DNA of 64,000 bases from Corallochytrium limacisporum Hawaii (GCA_002811645.1 PDIP01000003.1:372001-436000); one strand, 5' to 3'. Positions 25,180-56,434 are shown, counted from the first letter of the stretch. Made by a program: numbers and translations. The notes: generated by a model not told the origin, from the letters alone.

Positions 25180-26035
25180 ATGACGGCTCATGCAGTGGAG
25201 GCTTCTCCTCCGGGCCGGAGAAAGACTGTTGCGGAGGTATATGCTGATGCCCAAAAGATCGCAACTGATCTCGGATTGAACTTCTCTCATGTGGGTGTGC
25301 TGCTTCATTCCGATGTGATGAAAATCCATGCTATCGTTCACGACTACGATCATGAACAAGAGGAGCGCCATCGTATCCAACAACAGGCCATCCACGCCTA
25401 CGAGGCTAAATGCAATAAGGGAAGGCATCAGGGCAGAAGAGAAAGAATTTGCGAAATACGCTACGTCTCTCATTGATCAGTATAAAGCGGTTGGTGCCAA
25501 CACGTTCCACATGGAGTACAACTTGGAGGAGACGTTGTCCCATACAAAGAAGGAGGACGCCCTGAACCCAAAACTTCGGAGTGCAACTTTTGCTCGCTTA
25601 GGATTTGTGCAGGATGTGTCCCCTGATATTGAATATGATGGTCCCACTGGTCCCGAGATTTACCAACCTGAGAGTGACGAGGAGCTGAAAGAAGAAGGAC
25701 GCCAGCTCGCTGAATCTTGGAATGTTCCCAGCAAAGAGCACCTAAGAGCCGCACGGGCTGCCGCAGAGGCCAAGGTGGATGATGTTCCTGGAAACGAGTG
25801 CGCCATTGACGAAACCCCCATTGCGGAGGACTACGAAGGCACCGAGATAGCGGTGTCTGCCACAGGTGCAGAGGGGGTAAAACCTCAGGTATCACCTGCA
25901 CCTGATGAAGAGATTTATCATGCCGAGGAGCATGTTACAGTCGCCGAAAATGATCCGCCTTCTGAGGAAAGCTCTCTAGTTGTCGATGAACATGTAGCGT
26001 CTGAAGGTGGAGCGCTGCTACCTGCCACAAACTAA
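25180..26035 (+). pseudogene. CFAP210: CFAP210/CCDC173-like axonemal microtubule inner protein, internally deleted and frameshifted
   Basis: Frame 1 (to 25476) has GRRK...LNFSHVGVLLHSDVMKIHAIV, resembling the CFAP210 N-terminus. The +1 frame (25328-26035) has AEEKEFAKYATSLID...ATFARLGFV, resembling the CFAP210 C-terminus (EKEFEKYAREVIE...RRLGF). The central coiled coil is absent. Start uncertain (GTAAGT donor at 25088). Confidence 0.55.
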
Positions 26036-27314
26036 ATCAGGCAAACCATATGAGAATAATACAAGCAAAGAGTAATGCAACACTTCCATCATCTACCCGA
26101 TACTACAGCTGGCTGAAGAATCCAATTCAAACTATTACGAAAGCCACCTTCCATCCGAAACGGTTTTACGATCACGGAGATCTTCTCAGGGTTGCTCGTC
26201 GCGCTTCCCTCCCCACCGCCCCTGACCAACATTGCGGAACCGCTTGGCAACTGGGACTCCCTCCCTCCAGGCCCTCCCTCTCCCTCTCTCCTTGCCACCT
26301 GTTTCCTGCCGTGCCCAGTCGAAAACTCCCCCGTGGTCTAGTAGGTCCAAATATACTGATCAAATCAAAGAATCAAGTTACACCAATCAGCAACCGCTAA
26401 AATTACGGTCACCATTGCGCAGAGAGAGTCGAGCAGCTGCTTCGCCCACCCACGGATTGGGCGGCGCCAGTATCCCTCTTCCTGTGGTGGTGGCGGACGT
26501 TATCTCCGACTTTATATAGTTAATATACGGTACTTATTGTCGACATTTGGAGTGATGTGTGCGTCTTTGTGTGCAGCACTGACAGTGCTCCGTGATGGTG
26601 AGGTTCCGGACTTTCCTTTCATCATCCCCCGAACTGGACCCGACCGAACCGCTCTTTGTGGTGCCATCTCTTAGGAAGCGGGCGCTGATAGCAAAAGAAA
26701 AAAAGTCAACAAAAGTAAGAAAAGAAAACACAATTGGAAAATCCGGTAGTTTTTTTCCAGTACTGTTAGAACCTGTGCGATGAGACTTTCTGGTGACCCC
26801 ATCTATCACACGCACGCCGCGCCGCTGCGCTTTCCCCCTCCCCCACCCCCCAACCTTCCCCCGTTCGGCGATTTTTTCTACTTATGTGCTCACACTGCCG
26901 ATGGTTGTGTGACTTGTGCACTGTGAAGATAGTTATCGTTCGATGTCCATATAAAATATATAGAAAATAGGCGATCAGGAGAGGGAAGGAGGTATGAGAA
27001 CAAAACTGGCGTGTGCTTCGTCACGAAAGTGGTGGCCCTGGCCGGGAGAACTGGCGAGGGCTGTCGTGTGTCCGGCCGGTTGCCCTGCGGAGGGGAGGGA
27101 GTCGGTGCCTGCCCTTTTGGGGGAAGGAGAAAGGCGCGCCTTGGTCCCGCGCTTGAGTGGAAAGCTGTTCGGTTTTCATACCACTGTCTGTACAAGTTGA
27201 TGTGCCGGCTATATAAGACGGTTAGGATGCTCAACAGTGCGATAGTTTAGTCTACTGGCCAATATGTATATATATATATATATGAAAATCCCAAGTCATA
27301 CACAAAAGGAAATA

Positions 27315-28130
27315 ATGTCGGTGGCAGACATCACACTAGCCACTGTCGGGTGGATATACTTTGTGCTTTGGAGCATAAGCTTCTATCCACAAGTATATCT
27401 CAATTACACAAGAAAGAGTGTTCAGGGTCTTAGTTTGGACTTTGTCGTGTTGAATATTCTCGGATTCGCAGCATACACCTATTATAACATCGAGTTGAGG
27501 TATGACCCGACCGCACTGAAAGAGTATCATAGAGTTCACGGGCCGGGGCCTGCAGTCGAACTCAACGATGTGGTCTTTGCGGTACATGCACTGATCATGT
27601 CCGCTATTACATTGGGCCAGAGCTATGTCTATGAACGTGAAGAGGGACAGAAGACAGCAACTTGGGCAAAGGTCTTTGTTGTGGTATCGATTGTATACGC
27701 CGGGGCAGCGCGGGCCTTTACCGAACTCCGGTACATTAGCATTCTAGACTACCTCTACCTGGTGAGCCTGATCAAGATGGCAGTTACCATGACAAAGTAT
27801 GTACCGCAGGCGATGCTCAATCATCAGCGCAAATCAACCGATGGGTGGTCCATTCACAACGTTTTGCTGGACCTAGGTGGTGGCGTCTTTAGCTTCCTTC
27901 AAATGTTCCTCACTGGTTTCTTCTTTGGAGAATGGTCTCAGTTCACAGGCAACCCGATCAAGTTGGGTCTGAGTTTGTTCAGTGTTGGATTTGATATCTT
28001 CTTCATGCTGCAACACTACATCTGGTACCGTGACGTGCGAAGCAAGGATGAGGTCAAGCCTCTACTTGATGCTGAAAGTGGAGAGACGAGCAGGGCAACA
28101 GTTCTGACTTCGGATGATGAAATGGCATAA
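27315..28130 (+). CDS. CTNS: Cystinosin (PQ-loop lysosomal cystine transporter), without the luminal N-terminal domain
   Basis: GWIYFVLWSISFYPQ, RKSVQGLSLDF, KYVPQA, GWSIHNVLLDLGGG, GNPIKLGL. Acidic dileucine-like tail (DEVKPLL). Confidence 0.93.
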   Translation: MSVADITLATVGWIYFVLWSISFYPQVYLNYTRKSVQGLSLDFVVLNILGFAAYTYYNIELRYDPTALKEYHRVHGPGPAVELNDVVFAVHALIMSAITLGQSYVYEREEGQKTATWAKVFVVVSIVYAGAARAFTELRYISILDYLYLVSLIKMAVTMTKYVPQAMLNHQRKSTDGWSIHNVLLDLGGGVFSFLQMFLTGFFFGEWSQFTGNPIKLGLSLFSVGFDIFFMLQHYIWYRDVRSKDEVKPLLDAESGETSRATVLTSDDEMA

Positions 28131-28151
28131 GGCTTTTTAATTTCTTAAGCT

Positions 28152-30056
28152 TTACCAGATGTGTAAATCAGGAGCAAAGTGCTGACGGATGCGATCCATT
28201 TCCATCTCATGTTCCCATGCCACATACCCGTCACGAATGATGACGAGGTCGTCATCAGAGTCATTAGAGGTCGGCCACCAATTCGCAGAACCGGTAACAG
28301 TCACATAACCATCAATCACGGCAAATTTCTCATGGATTGCTGCACAGTTGTCACTGTGCCACATGGTCTTGATTTTGACCATCCGAATTCCGTGTTGGTT
28401 CAATCCCCAATGCGAGTGGTCAGCCGGAATCAGGCGGGTCTTATACTGGCCACCGTCATGAGTATTCTTTTCCAGGAAGATCGTTACCTTTACGCCACGC
28501 TGGGCGGCAGCCAGAAGATCACGAAACAGGTCGGACTCTACACCATTCTCCCAAAATATCATAGGTCTTAAAACGAACATGGTTATGTTGATCCGATGTT
28601 GGGCCTTCTGCACCTCTGAGCAAATGGCTTTTGTAGCATTTCTGTGTAGTAAGAATGAAGAACAGGAATCAGTTAGCATGTCAGTTCAAACGTAGTTATA
28701 CCATAGTTAAGGTTCCCATGTCGAACCCCGTAATAGAGATATTAAAAGTCATACTTACTGCCAGTGCGTGTAAATAACATCCACCTTATTATGTGGGTTG
28801 GGATGGGGCAATTGGAGAGGTGGATTGCCTCGGATGCATTCAAACATGGCAAGATACACTCTTGCAACATCATGATGCTCAACCACAATCAAGTTCTCGT
28901 GGTTTACTTCAAACGCTCTCCTTTCCCAGTTGCAGGAGCCGGTCAGTGTCGTGTGGCCGTCGATAACAGCAAATTTGGTGTGCATGGATGCGTGCTCAAT
29001 CTCTGGACGGATCACGGCAGTGTAGGCAACTCCGTTCAGCATGAGCCTCTTGAAGCCTTCGTTATAAAAGTACTCTCTGTTCAGCACCTTCTCCGAGGTG
29101 ATGAGATGGATTTTGACACCACGATTCTTTGCGTGAAGTAGACAATCGACCACCCCAGAATCATTGATGTTATAGATGGCGGCATGAATTGTGTGTTTCG
29201 CGCTGTTGATCAAGTTGCATATCTCAGTACGGACGTTGTTATTGCGAGTAAAGTACACCCGGACCGGCGTGTCGTGGTTCACATGAATGCCGTGAATGGT
29301 CTCTCCACGCCACCGCTCAATATGCCCGGAATGTTGGAATCCAATGACACCAACATGGTTGTTGTCCCGATTAAAGAGTTCCCATCTGCAGCGCGACGGC
29401 CCGAAGAGACCAAACGGTTTTCCGTTGGAGTCATCCTCTGCCATCATCAAATGTGCCACAACTCGAGTAACCTGGCCGACATGCCAAAAATTGTCATTGA
29501 ATTGGAATTTGACATGGTGCGTCTCATATCGTTCATGTGCCCTATGCATAACATACTGATGGTGTTCCCAAACCCGATGGCCTCCAGTGGTGGTGTGCTC
29601 GATATCCAGCACTAGGTTAATAGTTTTGTGATGGCTCTGATACTCCCGATTTGATGGATACATCCAAATCTGGGCGGTGCAGACATCGTGGTATGTGGTA
29701 CTGTGGACGTCTTTGATACGGTTCCCATGCGGATCAGCAAGTCTGAAGTCTAGTAGACAGGGAACTGTTTGCCTCCAATCGTGTTGAAGGTATGTTTGGC
29801 AATCGTGTGTGACATGAAAGTGATGGTCCGGACCATCCTCGAAGAAGTAGTGATTGCTACCATCGTTGGGATTCATTTGCAAGAACTTATACACCATGTC
29901 AGTTCCCTCGTTCCACCACAGAGATCCTTCCCATTTGAACTTACCATGATCTTGCCTGCACTGAAGTCGGAGGAGCTCTCGTCCATGGATGAATACATAG
30001 ACCTCGCAACCAGGCTGGGCCCAGCAGTCACAGCACAATGTTAACTGCTTTCCCAT
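28152..30056 (-). CDS. Two-HKD phospholipase D/nuclease-superfamily protein with CBM20-like, His-rich N-terminus; 2 exons (30056-28759, 28641-28152)
   Basis: HTKFAVIDGHTTLTGSCNW and HEKFAVIDGYVTVTGSANW. The two ORFs join in frame (HW-Q-NATKAIC) by removing intron 28642-28758 (GTAAGT...GCTAAC...ACAG). Confidence 0.88.
28642..28758 (-). other. Spliceosomal intron (117 nt) in the PLD-family gene
   Basis: GTAAGT donor, GCTAAC branch site, CAG acceptor. Splicing removes the stop and restores the frame. Confidence 0.9.
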
Positions 30057-31964
30057 ATTTCTAGACTGGCACATTTCACAAGATTCGATGTTATAAACTA
30101 GTATCAAACGAACTCAACATGGCCAGAAACTGCTGTCTAGACCAACTACAGGGAAGACGATGAAAGAATCTATTTACCGGACAGGTAGCCGAACGTAGAC
30201 CGCATGCATTCCGGAATCATCACGTGCACTGCAGCTTCCCATCTGAAATACATGTGCAAAGACTGTCGGATCTCATTACGTAAGTGCTCATTCAAGTGGA
30301 CGAAAGGATAAGAACAGCCACTCCGCTACGTGAGACCCGTTCATAGTGAGAGGGAGAAAATGGTACAAAGTGGTACTCCTCAACGTAGATCAATGAAATA
30401 TACGAATATTCCTCCTGATTCAATCAGAGGCAGAGAATTGCCGCTCTCTCCTTGTCAACTCGGGATGAGAAAGTGGGAAACTTACCGAGAGCCCACGAAA
30501 ATTTGCTGTGGATACCACACAGAGGATAGGGACCCAACGCATGAACAATAAATGTGCAGCAGCTGGAGGATTCATCAGGTTCGAAAAACCTGATCCGCAC
30601 TCTCATTCACCTGTACGATGTTTCTATCCGTTGTGCACATCCCAGTGCCTCTGGTTTCGAAAAACTGTACAGTAATTCTATATGAAGCCGATACCCACTT
30701 TGAAGCAAAGAGCAGCTGCAACAGCCTTAGGTAGTACAGTATGGGAACGGCCCATTCCATTGGTCGCAAAATCAGAAACAAATCAACAGGTGAGCACACC
30801 CTTCCTGAGTACTGGGACTGCTGTGCTTGATGATGCTGGTGCTGTGATTTGTTCTTTTTGTTTTCTCTTCATGCACAATGTGTGAAGCGGGTACCCGAAT
30901 GTGCACACTAATGGAAACATGGCTGGACGTATATACACTCTCTCATGGGCGGGGAAGGGTTTTGCTCGGGCGCTCCCCATAGCCCCGATAGTGCAACCGT
31001 GGAATGGGGCGCCACTATCTCCGCAGTTTTTATCATTCTGGAACGCTGTGTGTCTGTTATTGTTCCCTTCTGTCCCTGTTATCGCGCCTTACACCATCTC
31101 TATAATTGAACAAGTCAGTACAAAGAGCCCGGAGAGGGCCCAGCGAACACAAAATGTACATACCAAAAATCGCCAAACAAGGTAGCAGGAAAATTGTTCT
31201 TTCGTCCGGGCTTGCGGCACTTGACAGCTTTTGACGTCGTGATCTGGGTACCCACCGGATAGCAGATACGCACATCACGGACCAGGTAGTAGAGTCTCCG
31301 CATCAGCCGTGCCCAAGGTGTCTCGAATGGCACCATCGCTCGGGCCCTCTAGATCTTTACGCATATTACGCAGTACAGAAAATAGGTGGATCGTTCGCAC
31401 ACTAGATGGTTCACGAAATGATCAATTGTTGAAGACTTGTTTTGATTTTTCAACCACTCACTAGCCCCCCCCCCCCCCCCGCCCCCCGGGGCCCCCGGGG
31501 GGCTACAATTTCTTATAGGCTGAGTACTGCAAAGAGGTGCATGTGTGCATAATAGGAGGCAGGAATCGGCGAAGATGTGGGCTGCTGCAGGGGCGCCCCA
31601 CCCAACTTCTGCCGCGGGGGACAGAATTTTTTTTGGTGGCGAAACACCGGGCATTCCTTCACCGCTAACGGGGATCGGCGGCATCAGTCACCCAATTGCC
31701 TAAGAATAGTAGTTCCACTGGTTATGGTTTAGGCGGATAGACCGCCTCGACTGCTCGGTTTGGTGCGTTTGCTGGAGTTGTTGCAACGAAAGGGTTGGTT
31801 ATTTGAATGACTCAGCAGGAAGACACATTACTATGTGCGGACATCATTGAACTGTGTTCCTAACAAGCTTCTTCCTCCACAAAAACACGAGAGTGAGCAT
31901 GCAGTAAGAAATTCAAATTGAATCTTTGGTTGCGAGCACGAGTACAGAATAACACTACAACAGA

Positions 31965-33836: not shown

Positions 33837-34191
33837 GCCGCAGGGCGTCATTTTTAACTATTAAAAGCTTCAACGAACTGTATGCGTGTGGATCAGGTGC
33901 ATGAATCAATGTACAGGAAATGGACCATGCTCCCCTTCTTCCTCATTCCCAACCCCACCCGTGCAGGTGGAGGCTCAGGGAAAAAGCTAGCCATCCACAC
34001 CCGCACGTTCTGTTTTTCAAAACTGCGCTAGAAATTGAATGGGAAAGATTTTGCGAGTGCAACCCATTCTGCCTTCAGAGTGAATTGAAGGCTATTTTAC
34101 ATCCTCAGGCCTATTAAAGGAATGTGCACAAGAGAAGTGTTGAATCATCGCTAGAAAGGGCGTAAAGGGTGTTATCGCGAATGCAACCACC

Positions 34192-34824
34192 ATGCGGGTC
34201 TTTTCGCGTCTGCGGTCAGGGCCAGCGGTGTGGCGAATGCTGCTGCGTACTGAGCCACAATGCACGGGAAAAATTTCAACAGCCTCCAGGCGCATGTATG
34301 CAACACATAAAGATGGTCAGGCGGCGCCTAAGCAAAGCTTGTCTCGGTATCCAACAAAGCAACAGACCACAGCCGTTGGAACGGCACGCAAGGTTGTTGA
34401 GACTTCTAAGGATGTTGCTTATACAGGAGTAATTCTCGCTGGATTGGCATTTGTAGGCATTATCATGTACACTGTGACTAGTGAATTATTTAGCTCCGAC
34501 TCTCGGAATTCGATCTACCAAGACGCTCTTAAGAAATGCAAAGATAGTACGGAACTCATGGAGACCCTCGGAAGCGGTGTGAAGGCATTTGGGGAGGAAA
34601 CTCGCCGCGGTCGTAGGCGCCATGTTAGACACCAGGAATTCTGGGTCGGTGAAAGACAGTTCATGCGTTTGCATTTCTATGTTCAGGGAGAACGGGATCG
34701 AGGGACGGTGCATGTCGACATGGAGAAGAACGATAAGGGCAAGTACGAATACCGATTGCTGTGGGTGGAGGTGCCTGGTCAGGGCCTGCCCTCCAAGCAA
34801 ATTGTGATCCTGGATAACCGGTAA
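34192..34824 (+). CDS. TIMM21: Mitochondrial import inner membrane translocase subunit Tim21
   Basis: Presequence, YTGVILAGL TM, ELFSSDS, KAFGEETRRGRRRHV, MRLHFYVQG. Confidence 0.93.
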   Translation: MRVFSRLRSGPAVWRMLLRTEPQCTGKISTASRRMYATHKDGQAAPKQSLSRYPTKQQTTAVGTARKVVETSKDVAYTGVILAGLAFVGIIMYTVTSELFSSDSRNSIYQDALKKCKDSTELMETLGSGVKAFGEETRRGRRRHVRHQEFWVGERQFMRLHFYVQGERDRGTVHVDMEKNDKGKYEYRLLWVEVPGQGLPSKQIVILDNR

Positions 34825-34888
34825 TGAGGACGGGGCACTCTCAACTGTAATTGTAATATAGCCTTTTTAGGATTCCTTTTGTTTAAGG

Positions 34889-40238: not shown

Positions 40239-41517
40239 ATAGAATAGTATCAACATGACACCATACCATATTTTATCAAGGTCATCGTCTTGTCCTTCCT
40301 CTCATTGGCGATCTTGACCAAATGCACACTCCAATGTCGACTATTTCCAGCGCGGCCAACTCTCAGTTCGTGTTGACCGGCGACACACCTCCTTACCATC
40401 ACCTTGAATAACGCCATCAATACTGATGTCTCTGTGCTTGTACATCTACGTCCATTAGGCACCCCAGCAGCTACTGACCATTCGTCACGCCCTTGCAGCT
40501 GATGATCATTCCCGGGGCCTCCTCGTATTGATTCCCTTCCCCGGAGGGCCGGTGGGCCTCACTGGGAGCGCTTCGGCAGCGCGCTCCAGAGGGGCACCGC
40601 TTCATGTTGCCCTGCCATGACTTCCCCACTCTGCCCTTCTCCTTCAACAGAACTCGGGCCAATGACTATACTGACACCCCGCGGTGGCAAGGGTGAGGGA
40701 ACCCAAGACCCCCCCCCCCCCCGAGGGGGGGGCCACACAATTATCTCATTTGTGCTTCGTCATGGAGTTGCACGCAATACTGAACATATGGAGAATTCGT
40801 ACCAATCCACAGCCCGCCCCCTTCTTCTCACTTGCTTTCCTTTTCTCTGGTGTCGCGACTGTTTTTTATTCCCTGGCTAGTCGTTCTATTCGAATCACTG
40901 GCTGTACCTGACTGGCCATAGAACGCAAGCGCTCCACGAAAGAAAAAAAAAAATTTGAACGGGTGGGGGATGAGAGGGAAGAAAGGAGCGCGAAACGTGT
41001 CGCTCTCCCTCTCCCAGAATTTGAAGCAGTTCCAGTTCCCCTTTTCTCCTTTCCAGTCTCCCGGGTTCAAGCGCTACCCCCCCACTCACAGGCCCTATCA
41101 CCCACCGGTCCTTCCCTAGTCCACTGTACAGCGCCACACGCTTCTACCGTTTTTGCACCTTTCCTCTTGACGGCCGCTGGTGCCGGGACGAAGGGCACCA
41201 GCAGTTTGATGGAGGCCCGCACTTAAGATGAATGGAAATGGATCAGTGAGTCTCCGCCGGAGGGAGAAAAAGTGGGAGGATTTCTTTTGGGTCTTTTCCA
41301 TATGTGGGGGGCTTCTTGGAGCGAGCGTTGTTCAGCCACAGCCATACATTCAGACGTCGCGTTGGTTTTTCTTTTGGATTGTGATACGACTTCCAAATCT
41401 CTGACCACTCAGCTATTACAAAACCATGTAGATCACTGTTTTGTAGTATTCTTTCAAATTACACTACCTACAAATTTAGTGAAGAGTTTAGGGGTTGATT
41501 AGGAACAATAAGAAACC

Positions 41518-44583: not shown

Positions 44584-47500
44584 GACGTGTTCTATTTACG
44601 TGGCACACATATTTTTCGTTTTCTGTGCTAAATGCAGTCCTTATGCTTTCAATAGCTATATTGGTCGTCGTTCTGAAGATCTGGTCATATAGCCAGCCAT
44701 ATTGGAAATGTTGGAATGTTTTCAATACCTTTCCGAACCGAGTGCCAATACTCTTGACTGTTGTCCTATGAATACAATTGTTCATCAAATGATAAGAAAC
44801 AGGTCCCAGTGGACAGGATAAATGATGTATCAACAACGGGACAGTGTTGCCCTGCCTCCTGCCAAGGGGTGTGTGATGCGCCACTGTTGTGTGCGAAGGC
44901 TTGCAAGACGAACCAATAAAAATTTCTCTTTTGGGGTGTGGTGGGCAGGGGAGCAGAGAGAGAGGGGGAGCAGAGAGAGAGAGAGAGACGAAAGAAGGAA
45001 GACGGGGAGGAGGGGGGAAGTGTTTGGGAAGAGGGGGGGGGGGACACCACCCCACTGTGTCACCCCCCGTTCGTCCGACGCGAGAGAGGACAGCGTTTCC
45101 AGCATCCGTTTTATCCAAACATGCAGTGAGTGCCCTATGTTCTCACCATACAGGTCGCGACTAGAAAATTTTCCTGACCATGTGCCCAGTTCACCCCCGT
45201 ATGCTTGCCTTTCCCTCCCAATGGCCTATGGCCGCATAAATCAAATAAAGCATTTTCGGAATGGATCGTTTCTCTCGATTTCCATTTCAAGACCCAATCC
45301 CTTCAACATCAGAACATCCCCCGCCTATGCGTACCTTCGTATTGGTAGCAGGAGCAGCTTCTCAGCAACGGACGTATGTCAACCCCCACCCCCATCCTCT
45401 CCCGTCTGGAACGGAGTGTGAAACCCTTCTCTGTCTCCTTTTCTCTCTCTCTCTCCCTCTCTCCCTCTCCCAGTCTCAGTCTGTGTCATTCCTTCTCTCT
45501 CGCTCTCACTATTCCATACATTCCAGTATCGAGACCGCAAGCGCTTTGGCAAAAATCGATTACTCAGAAACAAAAAAATGAATGCGGAAGCGTAGAAGCA
45601 AGAACCGCGACCATCCATTCAACCCACAGAGCCACGATATTAACTTTTGTTGCCGGAGACTGTTGATGGCAAAACTGGGTTGCGGAGCAGAGGTTTCAGA
45701 GACAAACCAAAAACGGCTACAGAGTAATACCTTACCCAGATAAAAGTTGATGACAGGGAGAAGCGGGGAGAGGGGACTGTTGTATAGGGTCCGACAGCAT
45801 AAGTGAACCGGTAATACGCCTATGCAGGAGTAAATTTGAGACACCGATGGGAGAGAAGGTACACACACCAAATTTCTCATTTTGGAATTGAACGCGCCTG
45901 AGATCCGCACAGAGACTTGCTGACCCGAATGGCAACGAAACAGACGCGAGAACGCGAGATGAAACAGACAGAGTTGAGTGTTATTCGTTTGAACCCTTCC
46001 AAAAAAACTTGATGGATTTGGATGAGGCGTACTCAAAAAAAAAAACAAAGGGCGAAAGTAAGCAAATCAGTCGAGCACATAAAGCCATCTTCTCCGCCAC
46101 ACACTCTGGAACTAATTTGCCTTCTTTTTTTTTGCAAACAAAAAACTCGAACTTGTTGAAAATATCTCTCGCCCTGGGAGTCAGACACTGATAGTTCGCC
46201 TCCCACTACCTGGTGCAGATAGCATGATAGAGAATGACTGGGAGTTTCTCTTCACTGAGAATGTGGCACAACTGCACAACGGAGTTCGTAAAAGGCAACT
46301 ATTGCGGTCTGATTCTCCCGAATTGTGGAGCACGAAAATATACTAGAGAATCGTATAGGGAACATTCACTATACAATTGTATGGCCATCGAGACTTCAAC
46401 ATTACTTCCCCAGTATCGGAGGGTGAGAGGATCCGTTTACAGTAAGTGTTAAGAAAGCTTCACATTAGTCTGCCGATACCTTACGCACATACCTAATGAA
46501 TCGGTTCTCCACGTCTCTCGATGTGAAAAGGGTTTCATGTTGTGCTGGCCAATTTCACTTTCCTGGTCAGCCTCATGCAGTCATCTTGATTAGGTATCAG
46601 GGCTCCCTTTAAAATTCCCCATTTGAACAATAAAAGCAAAAGGCAGGAGCATTCATCAGAACCCAGAGTACCAGTTATGCCACCGTTCGAATAGATAGAC
46701 AAACAAAGGTTAGCTAAATGAAAGTTCCAGTGCGTGTGGGCTCTCATGTTAGGTGCCGGCACAACGCGCACAAGAGCCCGGCCGGTTCATATGAGCAGGA
46801 TGGTCTCCACCCACGAGAGCCCGCAGACAGTCGTACAAAGCGCACATCCGCCGGAGTTTGTTACTGTAAGTTTCTGTTTTTGCTCTACTGCCCTGTTCCA
46901 CTTTTACACCTTGAGCTCAGGATCGTATTGTTGTGAGAGGCTCGGGGTTTCAAAGTAAGCCGTCACACCCTTGGGATTCACGATTGCAAGTGTACGGTTG
47001 AATGTTTTGGCGTCACTTTTCCAATTAGTTGGCCTCCATCCGGGGGCTGCTGTGGGTTTCTCATTCTTTGTGGTATTTTCAGCTCAATCACTGGTACAGT
47101 ATTTATAGTGAAGGAATGGCTTCGTAACTGCGTTGGTTTCTTGACGGCTGTGCCCTTCCCCATTGCTGCCGGCGTAAGAAGATCACAAGATTCATCCCAC
47201 TCCAGGCGACAATATGGGCTGTAACCGGCAAATTCGAGACAACACATACCCTTCGCGTTACAAGCTGACCATCAGGAGATTATACAAAATGTATGTTGGT
47301 AACACAACGTATACGTAATTTTGGGTGGCATGCCGGGCTGCCAACGCACCCAGTGGGCGTGGAGCACAGAGGGCTTGCCCCTCCGTCCCCGGGGATCGTC
47401 TCCCCCAGGACACGAGATTATAGACCCTAAGCCACCTTTCCGTCGGGCGGGAGACTAAGCCTCGCCTGCTGAGCTCGAAAGTTTGAAGTCGAGCGTCCCA

Positions 47501-50047
47501 CAAAGGTCTTGCCCCTGCTTTTCGTTTCGAATTCTTGTAAGAGTAATAGACGAGTTGGGGAGCCGGGCGGCATGGAAGAACTTGTTCTGAACGCAATCGA
47601 GTACACTCTGCACAACCCACCTGTGAGTTAGTCATCAATGCGAACCAGACAGTACCGAGCGAGATCGAAGAAGTGGATACGGACGGTTCTCCTTTTGGTC
47701 AATTTTTGGAGCTCCATGCGAGGAGGGTACCCTATATTTGTTGCCATCGATCCCAAGCTGGCTCTGCCGCAAGGCGGACAGTTTCATTATTGAGCATTGA
47801 TACTCTTCCGGCTGGATCCTCCCCGTCTACCACATGAGAGTTTATCCACACACACACACTGCCGAAGAGAAAATTCTCTTCTCGCTTCCACTCTGCGGTC
47901 TACATCTACAACCCCACATGTGTTGACGCATGAGCAGATACTAACACTGAGCGCAAGGACAGGGAATTTTCCTCCTTCGTTTGTGAAAGAAGGGACCCGG
48001 GTTCGGTTCCAGGGGGCCAGTGCACAGACGGAGGATCTTAGAACGGGAGACAAAAAGGGTCCCCGGTATACTATTCTGGACGCGTTACTGCCGTCGATAT
48101 GACTGGGACCACTAAAATCTGTCTCGTGTGGGAAAGGTAGAGATGGATCGAGAGCTATAATACCCGTCTTGGACTAATTGTTACGCTGCCTATCAATACA
48201 CCATGCAATCTGTTGGGGGGCGCCAATTCGACCCGCCCTGCCGATGTTCCATCCTAGTGGACGGCTGCAGGGGTGCCCGTCTCGCAGAGAATGGATAAGC
48301 ATATCCCATTTCCAGACCATGGGCAAATAGCAACTCACGGTCTACCAGTGGGGTCAGCTCACTTGACAGTTGGCTTATGCCTCTCTCCGCCCCCGTAGCG
48401 CGATGTAATCATGCAGTATGAACCTTCTCGTTATAGTGAAAGAGTCGCGATTCTACCTACCTGTTTCTGCTGCTGGGCAAGAAATGTCTCTTAAAGCCAA
48501 TTTCTTCCCGTATACCTACAAGGATGGTGATCAACGATATGCCACTCCTGTTCCTTGAGCTTTCTATTTTTTGAATTCCGATTACTCAGTAGTTAATGTA
48601 TTATTTACGAGCCAAAGTCTGGATGACATGTACACTTTTTGGATTGTGTGACGGGGCTCTCGCGACGGGCTCCCGTTTTTGCCTGTGCGACATTGCTCGG
48701 CGAAGAGAAAAGCCATCTTCCCAACATAAGAACTGTATAGAGCACCGGGTAGAACTTCGTCTGGCCTGATAAAGGGACGCAAAAAATCTCTTCATCCGCC
48801 AATTCACACCGCCCGGGTGGTTTGGGCGCGCATCGGTGAGTGTGAATTTGAACTTGTTAATGTACGGAAACAGCAGGCCAACTAGGACAGGAAGTCTGGG
48901 ATCCCAATATCAAACATCGCCTCATCTTCATCATCGTCATTTTGTCCTATCATCCTTCAAATCATCACCCACTGCTCGGTCAAAATTCCATGAGAGCATA
49001 CAACATTTAAACTCGCTCTCAAAGCTCAAAGGCTCTACATTCATTTCACTCCACCGCGGTGTGTCCCATACCTGCCTATGACGCATGGCCAGGCTAGGGC
49101 GAACAAATTTTGCCAGCTATCAAGCAGTCACTAATCACCATCAATGTTTACGGTTGTTCCCTATGTGACGGGCAGCCTGGTTAACCACAATCCGAATTCA
49201 CACCGCGACATGTTTACGAGGTAGTTGGACTTCCTATGTACGTCATGAAAGTTCTCCGGATGGATTGGCGTGTTTCAGTAGCTAATCTGTGAAACAATGT
49301 AGACCCGATTCCCCGGCCAACAAGTTCATCCACCCTGTGCTCTTTCCTTTTTCCTTTTTCCAGTTTTGCTCAAGTAGACTCTCACCCGTCTTGACAAATG
49401 AATTCATAGATGGTGAGTGACTCTTCTGTAGGTGGGGCGCTTCGAAACTTGCCCAATCAAGCACAAAAGACAGTTGTGTATCCTACTTGTTGACCAAGGG
49501 GCGACGAGCTCTTAGCATTGTGGTCGCAGCGGGTATTGTGGGGGGTGGGGGGGGGGTTGAGCGGTGGGGAACATTTTACGCTTTCTTTCGCTTTCCAGGG
49601 CGAGGGAGCTCACAGATACCAGTGCACTCTCTTGAAAACCTGCTGCGATCTCCTGGCTTCTGACGAATGCGCATGCCAACATGACCAAGGCACAAAAGCA
49701 TGATGAGCTAAGATGTATTAGAACCATTGTAAGGAGTACCAGAGAACTGCGGATGGCCAGTGGATGTTTGGGTAGGAGCCCTTGGATTCGACCAAGAGTG
49801 TTGGGACCCGAACATTGACGTCTACTCAGGCCCCGTGTCTCAGTGTGGGGGGAACAATATTGATTAAATATTGATTTTCACGCGAAGAAAAAGCCACTTC
49901 TGTGCACCAGGGCACTTAGCGTGTACCTTAGCCAGGACCAGCTGTGTGGGGCGCCTATTTAGTTTGCCAGTTCCGCACATGTATTCCGGTCTTGTTACTA
50001 GCCCAACTAGAGAATCAGTCTATGACATGTGAGTTTTCGGTACAGTA

Positions 50048-50545
50048 ATGCTAAGGGCGCCCGTTTCTTTCGGTACTCGGCTGCAGCTTCCGCTCACCTG
50101 TCGGAGATGTTTTCATATCAAGCCAAGTAGAAAGGTGTATCAGGCGACGTCAAATCGCCTGGATCGTGTGTTGGCCTTTGCTGCTAATGAGGGTAGAGAG
50201 AAAGTCACAACTGCAATCATAGCAGGCGATGCGACCATCAATTTCAACGTGTGCAACAAGCCCAAGCAGGCAGTGAAAGCTGGGGACATAGTTTCGATAC
50301 GAGCGGAGGAGATCGATCGCAATGTTACGGCATACATAGAGCATGTCGAGCAGACGAAAGAAGCCGACTCCAAACGACAAAAGAGAGCATCGTTTCAAAT
50401 TCCTGTAGTAAAGTATATCGGTCTATTCCTGTCCGAAACCCACGGTGATGGTATCGATGATCAGTCCCTCGTGGACAAAATCAAAGCTGGAGAAGCTATA
50501 GAAGTCACTCCAAAGCCGATACTCAGCCCTGGAGAAGAGCTCTAA
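50048..50545 (+). CDS. MTRES1: Mitochondrial S4-like RNA-binding protein (MTRES1/C6orf203-like)
   Basis: Presequence plus S4 fold SNRLDRVLA...REKVTTAIIAG...KQAVKAGDIVSI. Confidence 0.62.
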   Translation: MLRAPVSFGTRLQLPLTCRRCFHIKPSRKVYQATSNRLDRVLAFAANEGREKVTTAIIAGDATINFNVCNKPKQAVKAGDIVSIRAEEIDRNVTAYIEHVEQTKEADSKRQKRASFQIPVVKYIGLFLSETHGDGIDDQSLVDKIKAGEAIEVTPKPILSPGEEL

Positions 50546-50982
50546 TCTTCTTATCGTCCTTGCATTCTACAACATCAATTACAATTTTCTGCAAAATTAA
50601 AGAAAGAGAAATCAAATAGTACCTGTCAGTAAACACCTTCGTAAAAACGTCAAGAATCGCAAAATGTTTCGCGAACACAACTTACTTCCGGCAGTTTTGC
50701 AATACTAGGGAGACCCTTCAGGCCATATACGTGAGGTTGACGAAAAGGGTGACTAGTGTTGCCCATCCAGTTCTCGCGAGGGACTTCTACTTCAACAAAG
50801 GGGCGGTCTAGGGTACTTGCGAGCTCTCGCACCACAGGGCTGACCACGGCATCGGACTCCACGCAGTCGGGGCACCAACTCTTGCCATTCTTACGTTCAC
50901 CGATGAAGTAGACAAAGCTTTTTCCACCAGTACGGCCAAGATGCTCTTCGAGCTCACTTTCTTTGATTGTGTCTTTCGCCAT
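50523..50982 (-). CDS. TXNDC17: Thioredoxin domain-containing protein 17 (TRP14); 2 exons (50982-50686, 50588-50523)
   Basis: GKSWCPDC active site, HPFR. Intron 50589-50685 (GTAAGT..TACTGAC..TTTTGCAG) gives C-terminus KIVIDVVECKDDKKIRALLQG, which matches the family ending. Confidence 0.9.
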
Positions 50983-52183
50983 TTTGTCCCCAATCGTTCA
51001 GATCTCCGTTTCTTGTCACACGTTTGTTGGAACTGTGAGCGAAACCGACTGTAGTGTGCTGCCTAATGTAGCCACATTGACTACAACCACTGAAGCGTAT
51101 CATTCAAGCACAGCACGCAATACAGATTGGCGTTTGAAATGGAGTGTATACTCGCCTTTGTCTCCAGTAATAGTCTGGAGCTGAAAGCTGGGACATGGCT
51201 TCGTGCGGTCTACCCTACACAAACCTGCTGGTGCGGGATGCGCAACAGTACCCCTCCCTTAGACAAAACACACACACACACTCCCCACCAGGGGGAGGGG
51301 TACGTTCAGTTCAAAATTGAGAACCGCGGGGTATTGATGCATGACAACGGAGTTCCTGACGTAGCACTGGCAGAGTACTGCGCAGACTGGTGCGACCCAG
51401 CAGTCTATTTCGTATTGGGAACCGCATCAAGGAGGGTCTCAATCGCCTTGACTATATCAGGGGGCCTCAATAAGCTCTGTATGTGTGACACTTTCATCAT
51501 GTTGCACACAAAGTCTTGAATGCTGATCGATGATCAACCCGTTAACTATCGCATGTTGCTCAGTCCTGCTGCTCAGCGAAATTCAACATCACCAACAGTC
51601 GAGCACGCGCCTTGCCGACACGTAATCAAGTCTAATCAAATGGCTCTGCATGCACCATGCGATTTCACATATCCCACGCAAGGAATAGAGTTAGCAGCAG
51701 CAACCGCTGTGTAACATACTCCCCTAGCGGTCGCTCGGTGTGCCCGTCCCTACTCACTCAACACTTTCCCTCTCTAGCGCTCCGAAAAGGGTCTAGGAGA
51801 CTCTTGGAAGACTCAGGAGTCCGAGGCTTCCAGCGTTGCTAGCGTTCGACGAACGGGTTCACACCTCCTTGGCTTCCTGGCCTGTTTCGTCCCCAGTGGA
51901 CGGGGGGAACCGGCTATTTGAAATTTTCCCGTCCCACCCCACCAGTTTTGGCCGTCACTAATCAATATATCATGTCTTCGCCTGGTCCGTGTGCCAGGTG
52001 TGGTGCTGTTGGCTGCGGGGGGCGATGTTCCATATCATGAGGACTCCTTCTAAAGGTTGTTGAGGGACGGCATTCAGGGCACGCTTACAACCCATCCACT
52101 CAAAAGTCAAAGAATGCGCAGCATGTTGATGGAAGACGGTAATGAGGAAGCTGTGAACACTTGAAACGGATTATTCGGGAAAG

Positions 52184-52789
52184 ATGATGAAATATACAGA
52201 ACGTGAGCCAAAGAAGCTCTCTAAGGCCGAAAAGCGGAGACTGAAGAAAGAAGCAGAGGCGAAGGCCCTTGAAGAAGAAAAGGAACAGATTCGTGAAGCG
52301 GGTGCAGCCGCTGGCCCTGACCATAGAGAGTTAGAAGCCAAGGGAATCCGGGAACAGCTGGCAAAGGAATCACTTGCCATAAAGGACATAGTGCCCGATG
52401 GTGACTGTATGTACTCAGCCATTGCTGATCAGCTAAAGCTGGTAGGTCTTCCTGAGCGAACAGCTGAAGAATTGCGTTCAGATTGTGTCAAGGAACTCCT
52501 CACCCGCAAGAATGAGTATATGCCGTTTATGCTGAAGGAAAACGGCGACGTGATGGACGACGAGGGCTACGGAGAGTATTGTCAGAGGGTACAGGGCACT
52601 AAACAATGGGGTGGTGATGTTGAATTGAAGGCACTAAGCAAGCATTTTCGTGTGAAGATTGAGGTCTATCAGTATGGCGGACCCAAGTACACCATTGGAG
52701 ATGGAGCAGAGGCACTCAAACTTGCATACCACAAGCACGAGTACAGTCTTGGAGCACACTACAACTCCGTAGTGCCGGCTTCGTTATAG
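52184..52789 (+). CDS. OTUD6B: OTU deubiquitinase OTUD6B/Otu2-like, N-terminally short
   Basis: SKAEKRR, IVPDGDCMYSAIADQL (catalytic Cys), WGGDVELKALS, YHKHEYSLGAHYNSV. Confidence 0.92.
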   Translation: MMKYTEREPKKLSKAEKRRLKKEAEAKALEEEKEQIREAGAAAGPDHRELEAKGIREQLAKESLAIKDIVPDGDCMYSAIADQLKLVGLPERTAEELRSDCVKELLTRKNEYMPFMLKENGDVMDDEGYGEYCQRVQGTKQWGGDVELKALSKHFRVKIEVYQYGGPKYTIGDGAEALKLAYHKHEYSLGAHYNSVVPASL

Positions 52790-52832
52790 TTGACATAGCA
52801 AATTTATGTAACATAACACACTAAATGTACTT

Positions 52833-53756
52833 CTAGATATTGATAAGAATATCCTTTCTCTGCCCATAAGGCATGTCGCCGTCCATTTGATTCCGTCGGA
52901 CCATTTCGGCCTCCAGTACCGAAATATGGTCTTTCAACTTCTGTGAAAGGATACGTGATTCTGCGAGGATCTCCGCTGCCCTATGAATTTTGATGGCCCG
53001 CATTCGTTCAACGCATTTTTGAAGCAGATTCACACTCTCATCAGTGCTGCGTAGCAGGAGCATCTTTTCATGGGTCTGCGCAATAGAACGACCGAGTTGT
53101 AACTTGGCCTCTGGTCTCAAGTCTCTGTGCTCTTGGGCATCCGTGGTCCAATTTTCGACTTGCTCCCGGCAAAGATCGCTGACAAGATTCAAAGTCTGAT
53201 AGAAGCGTGCATTGAGCCCATCGTCGGCTAATTGGATTGGCTTCATTTCCCCAGTCACCTTCTGCTTCAAGATATCCCTGCTCTCTGTTAAGGCGCTGTC
53301 CATTGAGACCATTTCTCTAACACGATCTGTCGCCTTCTTGATATCTGGCGGTAACAGTGAGCAAGTGCCTGGCATTTCTGCTTGAAGTGTCTTATGGGCA
53401 TCTGCAGTCTGTTTCAGCATTTCAAGATGTGCTTGTATACTGTATGACCAGCCAAGTCCCCGATTGGCGATGAGAACGTCACATAGCAGATTGCAAACTC
53501 CCACATCCCCATCTGGATAGTGGTCGATGTTGATGCCGCACAACTGCAAAACGTCAACATAGCCCCCTTGAGTTTCCAGTGCTGGTAAGTAGGATTCAAA
53601 GGTGCATCCATAATTTTCCAGCAGCTCCCGAGCCAGCCAATTGAGCACATCCTTCTTTACCGTCTTAGTCTGCAACAGATCGTAGTCCTCCTCCACTCCA
53701 TGGGTATCTAGCAGAGGACAGTCCAGTTCTTCCAATTTGCAGTACAGTTCCTCCAT
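52833..53756 (-). CDS. HAUS7: HAUS augmin-like complex subunit 7-like
   Basis: ELYCKLEELDCPLL...DVLNWL resembles HAUS7 EVFGKLKDLNCPFL...EILEWM. CSLLPPDI motif, coiled-coil C-terminus. Confidence 0.6.
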   Translation of the reverse strand: MEELYCKLEELDCPLLDTHGVEEDYDLLQTKTVKKDVLNWLARELLENYGCTFESYLPALETQGGYVDVLQLCGINIDHYPDGDVGVCNLLCDVLIANRGLGWSYSIQAHLEMLKQTADAHKTLQAEMPGTCSLLPPDIKKATDRVREMVSMDSALTESRDILKQKVTGEMKPIQLADDGLNARFYQTLNLVSDLCREQVENWTTDAQEHRDLRPEAKLQLGRSIAQTHEKMLLLRSTDESVNLLQKCVERMRAIKIHRAAEILAESRILSQKLKDHISVLEAEMVRRNQMDGDMPYGQRKDILINI

Positions 53757-54700
53757 GCTTCAATCGTTTCCAATAGTTACCCAGGCTTTAGAAACTGACC
53801 AGGTCGCGGACATACTGGCGTTCTCCTTGAAAATAGCCGTCCGACCCACCGACATCTCCCTTTCGCAAAGCATTGGCGCCAACGGACTCTTTGACGGCGA
53901 AAATCATTAATTTAGGGAACATATTAGGGTTTCATTTAGACAAGAACACACAAATTCTGGGGTGCGGGGGGCGAAGAACAGAATTTATTTTGCAGTTTTA
54001 GTCTGACCAACCCAGGAGCATTTGCACCGATGCCTCTCAGTATGGGCCTTGGCCTGTCGGGCGGGCACAAACAGTGCGGTCTTCAGAAACAAAGAAAAGA
54101 TCGAGTGGTCATCGAAACTACGCAGAGTTCACGGGCCCAATGACAGAGACGGCAGGCACGTGGGGGCCCATTGGATCTGAACGGGGAGTGGGTCGTTGGG
54201 GTTTCACACACATTCAATTCCGGGTGCCCTTCCAATTGTTCTTATCGTCCTTTCTGCGATGTTCCTGCCAAAAGCTGTGTAGGCACCAAAAACCCAAAAC
54301 CCCGTGGAGCCCACACGACGTTATTCCTTTTCTACGACGTTTTCACTGGTGTGCCCACGGCCAAACTACCACAACGGTTCTCCAGAGAAGGTTACGAGGA
54401 GGTGCTAACAACTGGCTTTCGGCACACTTTACGTTGTCTGTCGCGACGATTTCATACAGTTCACGAATGTGGATACGTGAAATCCTAGTTCTCAACAAGG
54501 AACTTGTGTTGGTTTGGATCTCTTGCGGACAGATTTTTTATATGTATATATAAAAAATGGAAACAAAATTGCCATGGTAAAGACTGTGTATGGCATGGAG
54601 TAGAATTGGTTATTTAAGGATCACTACACAATTTATTGAGATCACATGGCACAGGAAGTACTTATCCTTTATAGTTTGTGTATATCGGGAAAGCATCACA

Positions 54701-55297
54701 ATGGCATCAGAAGTTGAAGCAAAGATTACTGAGCTCCCTGACAAGGAGGAACAGGAAGTTGAGGTCAAGGACGTGGACTCCGACGAGGAGGAGGTTGAGG
54801 AGGTTGAGGAAGTCGACGGCGGTGACGAGTCCTCCAAGCAGTCTCGTTCAGAGAAGAAGGCTCGCAAAGCTCTCATGAAAATGGGTCTGAAGAAGGTCTC
54901 AGATATTTCTCGTGTCACTCTCCGTACTCGTCGTCAATTCATTCTGAGCATTGCTAAGCCCGATGTCTACAAGAGCACTGTCGGTGATACCTACGTTATC
55001 TTTGGTGAGGTTAAGATCGAGGATCTCTCGGCCCGCAACGCCGCCAACGCTGCCCAGCAGTTCAATCCTCAGGCCGCGGCTGCTGCTGCCCCAGCAGCCG
55101 CTGCTGCAGCTTCCGATGATGTTCCCGAGCTGGTGGAGTCTGCTGATGCCGACGAGGAGGTCGACGAGACTGGCCTGAGCGACGACGACATCAAGACAGT
55201 TATGGACCAGGCTGGTGTGTCCCGCAAGGTTGCCGCAAAGACCTTGAAGGAGAATGACGGTGACATTGTTGAGACCATCATGAAGCTGACCAAGTAA
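54701..55297 (+). CDS. NACA: Nascent polypeptide-associated complex subunit alpha
   Basis: KQSRSEKKARK, KPDVYKS, DTYVIFGEVKIEDLS, C-terminal UBA. Start at atcacaATG 54701. Confidence 0.98.
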   Translation: MASEVEAKITELPDKEEQEVEVKDVDSDEEEVEEVEEVDGGDESSKQSRSEKKARKALMKMGLKKVSDISRVTLRTRRQFILSIAKPDVYKSTVGDTYVIFGEVKIEDLSARNAANAAQQFNPQAAAAAAPAAAAAASDDVPELVESADADEEVDETGLSDDDIKTVMDQAGVSRKVAAKTLKENDGDIVETIMKLTK

Positions 55298-55545
55298 AGT
55301 TTGATGGGAGCATGATGGTTTTATGAGACGTACACATTTGGCACTGGCATTTCATCACATGTTTCACGTATTTTTACATTCTTCCCTTTGTCGTCTCATT
55401 TATCACAATACCTTAAAGTAATCTGTAGATATATCCATAACACATTGGTTACGTTTTAACATTTGAGACACTAAAATGGTGTATCGCTATGTTTGCTGTG
55501 ATCTTGGGCGTATTCTGTCACAGCTGTTTGGCAACTCTGTAAAGC

Positions 55546-56434
55546 TCACATGTTGATCATGAATAGTCTGTTATTGAACACATATGCGGTGAGAATCCTG
55601 GAAACGTACCAGAAAATGGAAAAGGTTGTCAGGAACTGGATCCATGCAAGTTTGACTGTCTCCCAGAATGTTGGCTCGTAAAGTACGGATGTCTCTGCGT
55701 AGCGAATTGAGCCAGTTATCACAAACGGGTCATCTACAGCCCGTCCACAGCGCCACGTCTCATGTAGGTCATTCAGTGTCATAGTCACGTTTCTGCGTAC
55801 GTATTCTAGTATGATGTTAGAAAGATCATAGTCACGAATGGATGTGGATGCCATATTCAGGATATCATTATCCCTCACACCCATGAGTGGCCGGGTCTGG
55901 ACGAATCCAACTGAACCCGAAAAGGTGTAGTTACCACCTTCCCGTGGACTGTCATGCTGAACATCAATGAGTCCCTGCGTTGTTTGTCTTCTGTATGCAT
56001 TAAATGTGATGTTGAAGAAAATGACTATGCGAGCAGATGGAATGCTGTCGGCTGACGTGGCGGGCAGAGATGTGGTGATCTGCATCTCGTTCAGGCTTGC
56101 CATCATAGTCTGTATCCCTTTCCGCAGTGGTCACAACAGGGACTCGCAAGTTGGCTTGCATAAGACTGTTTAGGTTTCCAATGCTACTCCAGAAAAGAGG
56201 AGCATCGCACACTGAGCCCTGTGTCTGAACAATTATCTGACCCTTGTACTGTATGTCGGGCTGTTCGAATGCCTGGATGGAGTCTACCCAGAAAGAGCCG
56301 GTTGAGTACGCCACCAGAAAGGAGACAACAGTGGTGCACAGAAAGACCAGTAACTGGAACAAGAAAGCCAGGGACCCAAGCTCAGCACGATATCTGCGAA
56401 CCACTGGTTCAGCGTGGATCGTGTACAAGGCCAT
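55546..56434 (-). pseudogene. TMEM231: TMEM231 (ciliary transition-zone MKS module) with a single +1 frameshift
   Basis: ORF 56434-56000 gives MALY...YRA...FW...EQP...LRVPVV...DYDGK. ORF 56106-55546 gives ...YDLSNII...RNVT...W..GRA.DDPFVI...YEPTFWETVKLAWIQ. Removing one C at about 56095 (aag-C-ctg) gives a collinear full-length protein. Confidence 0.88.

Follow-up and report, generated by a model that had tools for sequence, protein, structure and literature searches.

Corallochytrium is a single-celled relative of animals. It is widely credited with a hidden flagellate stage, predicted from the presence of most flagellar toolkit genes in its genome (Torruella et al. 2015, cited through PMC7147346 and PMC12731214). 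A cryptic flagellate stage was likewise inferred from gene presence for Aureococcus and Ostreococcus. Centrioles have been seen in C. limacisporum (PMC11153136), while a flagellum is never mentioned in a dedicated life-cycle study of the species. The sister of Corallochytrium, Syssomonas, is flagellated. Stable transfection has been established for C. limacisporum (bioRxiv 10.1101/2020.11.12.379420). Loss of flagellar genes has been described for non-flagellated fungi, Capsaspora and ichthyophonids (PMC7147346, PMC12731214). Our analysis deals with the organism and the genes on which the case for a cryptic flagellate stage was built; unlike a reading of gene presence, a reading of gene integrity revealed that many of the counted components are unable to encode full proteins. 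The pattern is like that of trait-loss pseudogenes in the lineages above, with mixed disabling lesions in the trait genes, intact housekeeping genes and modules at different stages of decay. It differs from them in that the Corallochytrium relics are still recognisable, IFT-A appears to be under constraint, and a hidden flagellate stage has been predicted for this very organism.

The starting point was a window of 64,000 nucleotides from C. limacisporum Hawaii (GCA_002811645.1 PDIP01000003.1:372001-436000), in which the original prediction had singled out two frame-disrupted loci, both taken to be ciliary genes. The first of them is TMEM231, with the following parts:

Positions 56093 to 56434, minus strand: frame-0 N-terminal piece of TMEM231, 114 codons counted from the start codon, matching PF10149 positions 1-114/115 (104 bits)
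Positions 55546 to 56091, minus strand: C-terminal piece of TMEM231 in the +1 frame, stop codon included, matching PF10149 positions 116-297 (132 bits)
Positions 56089 to 56095, minus strand: frame break with one base too many; 56092 stays unpaired between the aligned pieces

PF10149 represents TMEM231, which is one of the subunits of the MKS/B9 module in the ciliary transition zone, and the match is to nearly the whole profile: the two pieces, which together make up the locus at 55546-56434 on the minus strand, cover positions 1-297 of 301 with 104 and 132 bits (cut-off 23.2). Unlike known TMEM231, the gene loses its frame after codon 114. The codons aligned to the profile run up to 56093 in the N-terminal piece and resume at 56091 in the C-terminal piece, the +1 frame being open from 56130. 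The two halves thus lie in different frames, and frame 0 runs into a stop codon at 56000-56002, 31 codons beyond the shift site. Within 56089-56095 the inserted base is not assignable to one position. Because the pieces adjoin at PF10149 positions 115/116, there is no space for an intron between them, and no intron signal was found in the shift window. The profile is continuous over the break site, so orthologues in general should lack a shift there. A six-frame search with PF10149 over the whole assembly (24,109,830 bases) found this locus only and no intact paralogue. Judged by the assembly sequence, TMEM231 is a single-copy pseudogene that lies in the gene's original place and did not come from processing or duplication.

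The C-terminal piece has a single relative in the databases, eukprot Clim_evm165s157 (99% identity), a gene model that crosses the break by means of an intron. This putative intron was compared with introns verified in the same genome, two of which, from the window, are listed with it:

Positions 55975 to 56056, minus strand: 82-nt 'intron' of Clim_evm165s157, with donor GTCAGC and no CTAAC-type branch; its +1 frame reads as ancestral TMEM231 coding sequence
Positions 50590 to 50683, minus strand: comparator intron of the TXNDC17-like gene, GTAAGT ... TACTGAC ... CAG, a genuine frame change by splicing
Positions 28642 to 28758, minus strand: canonical comparator intron with GTAAGT between two PLD-domain exons

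Among the five verified introns, the donor is GTAAGT in four and GTAGGT in one, and a CTAAC/CTGAC branch is present in all five, neither of which features the 82-nt stretch shares. Its interior, read in the +1 frame, is homologous to TMEM231 coding sequence, which argues against an intron. Clim_evm165s157 is without PF10149 positions 116-154; when the 82 nt are kept, the score of the C-terminal piece rises from 112.3 to 132.2 bits (about 20 bits gained) and positions 116-155 are filled. It is conceivable that positions 56056 to 55975 are spliced out all the same, so that intronization rescues the frameshift and a 268-aa protein with possibly retained function is made: 82 is of the form 3n+1, so excision restores the frame, the stretch ends in GT...AG, and an evidence-based model adopts it. 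We consider such a rescue improbable given its deviant splice signals and its product, which would carry 12 out-of-frame residues and miss conserved positions 116-154. Furthermore, the partners B9D1, B9D2 and Meckelin are broken, and a rescued TMEM231 would therefore have no complex to join. On sequence criteria, Clim_evm165s157 is a model that hides the TMEM231 break behind a non-consensus 'intron'. The published proteome thus lists TMEM231 by way of a model that skips the lesion, which bears out the earlier claim that presence/absence counts overstate flagellar capacity.

All other named genes of the window are intact. As had been claimed, the named non-ciliary genes read through, and the frame changes in the TXNDC17-like and PLD genes are due to canonical GTAAGT introns. 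An intron as the cause of the break was rejected for TMEM231 and for the second locus, neither shift window containing a consensus donor. Reassignment of TAG was also rejected, as the genes of the window and 25 control genes (described below) read normally with standard stops.

The second locus lies at 25180-26035 and was divided by codon usage as follows:

Positions 25180 to 25434, plus strand: upstream part, with codon-usage log-odds positive in frame 0 only; frame-0 stop at 25474-25476
Positions 25421 to 25434, plus strand: frame-switch zone from frame 0 to frame 1, where the maximal-scoring segments abut; probable surplus of 1 nt or a larger indel
Positions 25427 to 26035, plus strand: downstream part in frame 1, codon score 58.5; the start of predicted protein P0001 is an ATG inside this frame

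This locus had been labelled CFAP210-like, and homologues were sought with its two pieces, the pieces of this locus and of TMEM231 being searched separately and not as a joined or spliced protein. With the C-terminal piece, exhaustive HMMER searching of 1.84 billion representatives returned only the sequence itself and one repeat protein, P0002, which was judged spurious; ESM Atlas features and a word search gave nothing or chance-level matches for the same piece. The N-terminal piece, searched more narrowly, had no match in PDB, in the ESM Atlas or in the word search within its length limits. No PDB chain was matched by phmmer at E<=10. No Pfam family, including TPH (PF13868), was matched by hmmscan at E<=10 except DUF2145, whose 21 bits are below the cut-off and were likewise judged spurious. 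Within its own genome, the locus had no detectable paralogue and no similarity to MNS1 by BLASTP, and the TPH profile, which at E<=1 found MNS1 and one relic elsewhere, did not match it. No measurable likeness to CFAP210/CCDC173 or to other TPH-domain microtubule inner proteins was thus found, and a ciliary identity is unsupported by any search run. The locus would be a lineage-specific orphan, whose break, if real, would be unrelated to flagellar decay; of the two genes claimed to be ciliary, only TMEM231 has support as such.

A frame change in the orphan is likely from codon statistics, there being no homologue to align. Frame 0 is coding-like over about 118 codons and ends exactly at the start of the frame-1 segment, and neither a GTAAGT-like donor nor a usable acceptor was found at the frame switch (25421-25434). 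Upstream of the orphan, an ATG is directly followed by GTAAGT at 25086-25094, a motif that also occurs near the 5' end of the PLD ORF; an intron from this ATG (25086) into frame 1 was rejected for want of an acceptable acceptor. The gene might alternatively consist of the frame-1 ORF only, encoding the 227-aa P0001, with the frame-0 ORF being a chance ORF or an upstream ORF in the leader. The internal frame-1 ATG at which P0001 begins would fit this, no homologue links the two pieces, and antisense shadows of real genes attain similar codon scores; against it stand the extent and exact end of the frame-0 signal and the upstream ATG-GTAAGT. We regard the frame-1-only gene as a serious possibility, if the less probable one. 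The claim that both loci are frame-broken accordingly stands for TMEM231, with its one surplus base, and in a weaker form for the orphan.

To place the TMEM231 lesion, cilium genes were surveyed over the whole genome. The lesions detected in loci other than TMEM231 are:

B9D1-like gene: one TAG
B9D2-like gene: two TAG at Trp positions and one -1 frame change
IFT57: a +1 frame change within a variable, acidic linker
IFT46: relic only, requiring a +1 shift
Meckelin: relic only
DNALI1 (inner-arm dynein): two -1 frame changes
Dynein heavy-chain relic: one TAG
TPH relic: one TAA

At the IFT57 break, in the variable linker, a non-canonical intron is possible. For ciliary families of our own choice, which do not form a blind matched set, 9/12 recognisable loci were broken or relic, compared with 0/25 housekeeping controls (Fisher test, P-value = 1.8e-6); counted by codon, there were 8 lesions in 2175 ciliary codons and none in 14172 control codons (P-value about 1e-7). 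The controls comprised 10 Cpn60/CCT genes, 14 proteasome genes and one dynein-1 ORF of 4907 codons. Several genes are relics or have two or three lesions each, Meckelin and IFT46 with large deletions. Lesion kinds are mixed, including TAG and TAA stops, deletions, three +1 frame changes and three -1 frame changes (B9D2 and DNALI1 twice). Whole-genome family searches gave no match for tektin, RSP3, Radial_spoke, TCTN, BBS5 and IFT81_CH. Canonical CFAP20 was not found, the CFA20 domain matching only inside two large ORFs and once weakly in a stop-ridden sequence; seven families in all had no match or non-orthologous matches only. Axonemal dynein heavy chains were found as a relic only. Among the MKS partners of TMEM231, the B9D1-like and B9D2-like genes are thus broken, Meckelin is a relic and TCTN is unmatched. 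Long open frames were found for the IFT-A subunits WDR35, WDR19 and an IFT140-like gene, and MNS1 (484 aa), a PACRG-like gene and a TMEM17/216-like gene are unbroken too. Judging by these reading frames, decay of the toolkit is clearly selective rather than uniform, with IFT-A maintained. The original prediction of a decaying flagellar toolkit is therefore upheld by TMEM231 and the broken or relic cilium loci, with this restriction to part of the toolkit, and the enrichment of lesions in ciliary over housekeeping genes that it had proposed to look for was found.

The survey also bears on whether the TMEM231 lesion is real and fixed. The assembly of C. limacisporum was made with SPAdes from Illumina paired-end as well as mate-pair data, about 150 million 100-bp reads (PMC5560861, which gives BioProject PRJNA360047 for the genomic reads and PRJNA262632 for the RNA-seq). 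Because the data are this deep and the break site is not a homopolymer, we take the lesion to be probably no assembly artefact. It is unlikely that assembly or consensus calling went wrong at 56092, or that the locus is heterozygous or polymorphic, with one allele broken and an intact copy persisting in the same cell or in another strain, even though the only database copy of TMEM231 comes from the same assembly and the ploidy of C. limacisporum was not found in the literature on its life cycle. The control codons are free of lesions, the ciliary lesions include nonsense substitutions, which indel-type errors cannot make, and multiple genes have two or three lesions or survive as mere relics. 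There is a similarly small chance that decay is unfinished or unfixed, the TMEM231 break being bypassed by the weak 82-nt intron or the lesions being polymorphic, with a flagellated stage in other isolates or wild populations. If the lesions are polymorphic, the sequenced strain caught flagellum loss in progress.

Programmed +1 ribosomal frameshifting is known from antizyme, from yeast Ty1, ABP140 and EST3, and from Euplotes. The likeness of the present loci to these systems is arithmetic only, the downstream frame being +1. Unlike in those systems, no shift-prone codon lies beside a rare codon or 0-frame stop; the sites share no motif, and frame changes elsewhere are of both signs. The original prediction had noted that both of its loci need +1, which holds as arithmetic for the two and fails as a trend at three against three genome-wide; it had raised a +1 recoding or editing switch for ciliary mRNAs, by which the genes would be functional and used in a hidden flagellate stage. 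TMEM231, IFT57, IFT46 and the orphan all require +1, and the two B9D2 TAG codons at Trp positions could in principle be restored by A-to-I editing. A search of both shift windows for known +1 motifs (CTTAGGC, TCCTGA, AAATAA/AAATAG and CTTAGT) found none, nor do the TMEM231 and orphan sites have a motif in common, and the 0-frame stop of TMEM231 is not adjacent to its shift site. The -1 changes in B9D2 and DNALI1 are of the wrong sign, and neither the large deletions in Meckelin and IFT46 nor the unmatched tektin, RSP3 and radial spoke are recodable. Since core axonemal parts (tektin, radial spoke, canonical CFAP20 and axonemal dynein heavy chains) have no match or are relics only, recoding could not restore a flagellum. 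Such a switch is thus extremely unlikely.

The explanation that we favour, and hold to be very probable, is that TMEM231 became a pseudogene by a one-base insertion within a flagellar apparatus freed of constraint, the orphan break, if real, being unrelated. The insertion after codon 114 would inactivate TMEM231 at its own locus: the ribosome would be out of frame and stop 31 codons on, and presumably no full TMEM231 is made. This lesion would be one of many in an apparatus without selective constraint, in which transition-zone partners, IFT-B subunits and inner-arm dynein genes have acquired stops or frame changes of both signs or have become relics. No match was obtained for most of the axonemal motility genes searched, and the housekeeping genes are untouched. 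IFT-A would still be maintained and some centriole-linked genes kept open, presumably for non-flagellar roles.

Most transition-zone, IFT-B and dynein-arm genes checked are dead or without a match, which argues for loss of the flagellum in the Corallochytrium lineage. Such a loss would alter reconstructions of flagellum loss over Holozoa. TMEM231 also serves as an example of the caution due in any inference of cryptic life stages from gene presence or absence. In addition, the long IFT-A open frames beside decaying IFT-B and transition-zone genes may allow non-ciliary roles of IFT-A to be tested in a natural setting.

The transition-zone gene TMEM231 (MKS module, Pfam family PF10149) is divided between two reading frames in the window.

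55546-56434, minus strand: TMEM231, two ORFs overlapping at 56000-56106

In the Pfam profile search, PF10149 positions 1-115 corresponded to residues 1-114 of the upstream ORF, and positions 116-297 to the downstream ORF, which lies in the +1 frame and aligns from its residue 6. The final aligned codon of the N piece ends at 56093 and the initial aligned codon of the C piece begins at 56091, leaving exactly one surplus base and thus no room for an intron. The original prediction, that TMEM231 is disrupted by a +1 shift, was confirmed, the pieces abutting at profile positions 115/116. Out of frame, translation would end 31 codons past the break. A genome-wide profile search located PF10149 at this single locus, and the only database relative of the C piece is the published TMEM231 model (eukprot:Clim_evm165s157, 99% identical).

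That model (268 aa) continues for 12 residues in frame 0 past the break and then splices out 82 nt (56056..55975). The excised stretch has the donor GTCAGC and no CTAAC-type branch; the five introns verified in this genome (one each in the TXNDC17-like, PLD and proteasome subunit genes and two in SUMO) have the donors GTAAGT (four) or GTAGGT (one), a CTAAC, CTGAC or TTAAC branch and lengths of ~90-120 nt. The model lacks PF10149 positions 116-154. Read in the +1 frame, the skipped stretch covers positions 116-155 and raises the score of the C piece from 112.3 to 132.2 bits. Because it fills this part of the profile, the stretch is, on alignment evidence, ancestral TMEM231 coding sequence, and the one-base break in the frame of the gene is real. 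Rescue of the frame by so weak an intron is possible but improbable, and would yield a protein without a conserved segment. An assembly indel is also unlikely, given the deep Illumina data behind the assembly and a shift site outside any homopolymer.

The prediction that a second gene is both ciliary and frame-disrupted fared differently in its two parts.

25180-26035, plus strand: orphan gene, frames scored by codon-usage log-odds

The log-odds, for which nine long window ORFs served as training set, took positive values over ~25160-25434 in frame 0 and over 25421-26017 in frame 1. We lean towards a frame break as the best reading, because the maximal-scoring segments abut, the shift window contains no splice donor, and no acceptable acceptor was found that would link frame 1 to the ATG-GTAAGT lying upstream (25086-25094). 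Alternatively, the gene may be the frame-1 ORF alone, as in a 227-aa prediction, since no homologue links the two pieces. The ciliary identity was not upheld: Pfam, the TPH profile run on the gene's own genome, PDB, ESM Atlas features and a word search were blank or at chance level, and when the C piece was compared exhaustively by HMMER with 1.84 billion representatives, the only matches were itself and one spurious repeat protein. No paralogue was found in the genome, nor any similarity to its own TPH protein MNS1. The label 'CFAP210-like' is unsupported, and the gene is an orphan. The sequence AGATCATGGTAAGT, in which ATG is directly followed by a consensus splice donor, occurs upstream of this gene (25080-25108, plus strand) and near the 5' end of the PLD ORF (29924-29952, minus-strand sense); it may represent a recurring architecture with an intron right after the start codon.

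As predicted for the non-ciliary genes, all other nameable genes of the window are intact; where checked, their domains span the complete profile or almost all of it.

SF3B1-like, ETFA, Na/H exchanger, BEACH protein, cullin, cystinosin-like, PLD protein
p53-family protein, TIM21, RPSA, RPL35, NDUFS6-like zinc finger, RhoGAP
TXNDC17, OTU, NAC, G-patch protein, RING protein

None of these is cilium-specific, so the window contains one demonstrable ciliary gene, TMEM231, and it is broken. A minus-strand frame change just upstream of the last TXNDC17-like exon is a canonical 94-nt intron and no lesion; at 50523-50545, this minus-strand exon ends within the 3' end of ORF 50033-50545, which runs towards it on the plus strand. 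The stretches 44600-50000, 17400-21500 and 10200-12980 have no coding signal or long ORF of coding-like codon usage and are rich in CT/GA microsatellites (e.g. 17856-17948 and 45422-45512). At the intergenic positions 17395-17449, 17558-17619 and 40673-40735, a run of 8-14 C is directly followed by one of 8-14 G, forming palindromic junctions, two of which flank an N run (assembly gap) at ~17450-17520; a further N run lies at ~12440-12730.

For a survey of lesions, the whole assembly (24,109,830 bases, 286 contigs) was then searched in six frames with Pfam profiles of ciliary families of our own choice, and the loci were read; a missing match in such a search does not prove absence. The pieces of each broken gene were searched separately throughout. 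In the following lines, C numbers are contigs; the window itself is C186:372001-436000.

B9D1-like: one TAG
B9D2-like: a TAG at each of two Trp positions, plus a -1 frame change
C247:5706-5834, plus strand: Meckelin/TMEM67, 43-residue C-terminal relic immediately 3' of an intact GLRX3/PICOT-like gene
IFT57: one +1 frame change, in an acidic linker
IFT46: recognisable only over ~100 C-terminal residues; also a frame change
DNALI1: two successive -1 frame changes
Dynein heavy-chain relic: one TAG
TPH relic: one TAA

The remainder of Meckelin appears to have been deleted, and TMEM231, with one lesion, is a lightly damaged example of decay. Besides the dynein relic, the survey contained a single intact dynein-1 ORF (4907 codons). 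Assembly artefacts or heterozygous alleles are an unlikely source of these lesions. The 10 Cpn60/CCT and 14 proteasome subunit genes used as controls, with the dynein-1 ORF as a 25th, are all intact, the only split one having a canonical intron. Ciliary genes carried 8 lesions over 2175 codons and the controls none over 14172 (P about 1e-7), and 9 of 12 ciliary loci were broken or relics compared with 0 of 25 controls (Fisher 1.8e-6, for author-chosen families), which agrees with the predicted lesion enrichment and decay of the flagellar toolkit. The predicted bias to +1 was not seen, with three +1 and three -1 changes genome-wide. All four in-frame stops of the B9D1-like gene, the B9D2-like gene and the dynein relic (C282:9707-10180, C70:23139-23563 and C261:50910-51308) are TAG, but four stops are too few to call a bias. 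The two B9D2-like stops coincide with what we take to be tryptophans of human B9D2, and would fit TGG-to-TAG transitions. Tektin, RSP3, Radial_spoke, TCTN, BBS5 and IFT81_CH had no match in the assembly-wide six-frame search, in which the CFA20 domain gave only two large ORFs, one possibly WDR90/POC16-like, and one weak stop-ridden match, with no canonical CFAP20 gene evident.

Whereas IFT-B and transition-zone genes are decaying, the IFT-A frames of the same genome are uninterrupted; three further ciliary genes, listed after them, are unbroken too (L numbers are stretches outside the window).

L016:1210-5583, minus strand: WDR35/IFT121, 1457-codon ORF, E = 1e-123 to human WDR35
L017:2169-7712, minus strand: WDR19/IFT144, 1847-codon ORF, E = 2e-94
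L018:3168-6890, minus strand: IFT140-like, diverged, 1240-codon open frame from TTG, weaker match (E = 2e-10)
L009:897-2351, minus strand: MNS1, 484 aa, E = 8e-74 to sea-urchin MNS1, unbroken
C250:130244-130741 (L013), plus strand: PACRG-like, diverged, unbroken
TMEM17/216-like gene: unbroken

The WDR35, WDR19 and IFT140-like frames contain no internal stops. If these 13.6 kb of IFT-A decayed at the density measured for the broken genes (1.2 lesions per kb), they should hold ~17 lesions; 0 were seen, from which we infer purifying selection. On the same calculation, intact MNS1, PACRG-like and TMEM17/216-like genes could be chance survivors (P = 0.17, 0.45 and 0.58, respectively). Chance survival, or a role outside the axoneme, may account for unbroken MNS1 and PACRG-like genes in a genome where the searches found no tektin, radial-spoke protein or canonical CFAP20. 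Centrioles have been observed in C. limacisporum (PMC11153136), and their presence could explain the retention of centriole-linked genes.

The best explanation is that a flagellated stage was lost and that the genes serving that stage alone would then have decayed neutrally. Programmed +1 frameshifting or editing, also proposed originally, was rejected because the lesions are heterogeneous, the shift sites contain no frameshift motif and share none, and core structural genes are unmatched or relics. Reviews still cite a cryptic flagellate stage as predicted (PMC7147346); Corallochytrium has been placed among flagella-losing lineages on evidence called ambiguous (PMC12731214), and a detailed life-cycle study of C. 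limacisporum never mentions flagella. The searchable literature yielded no account of ciliary pseudogenes in this genus. Trait loss is already known to leave pseudogenes behind, so Corallochytrium is a new instance, and a consequential one, of such decay.
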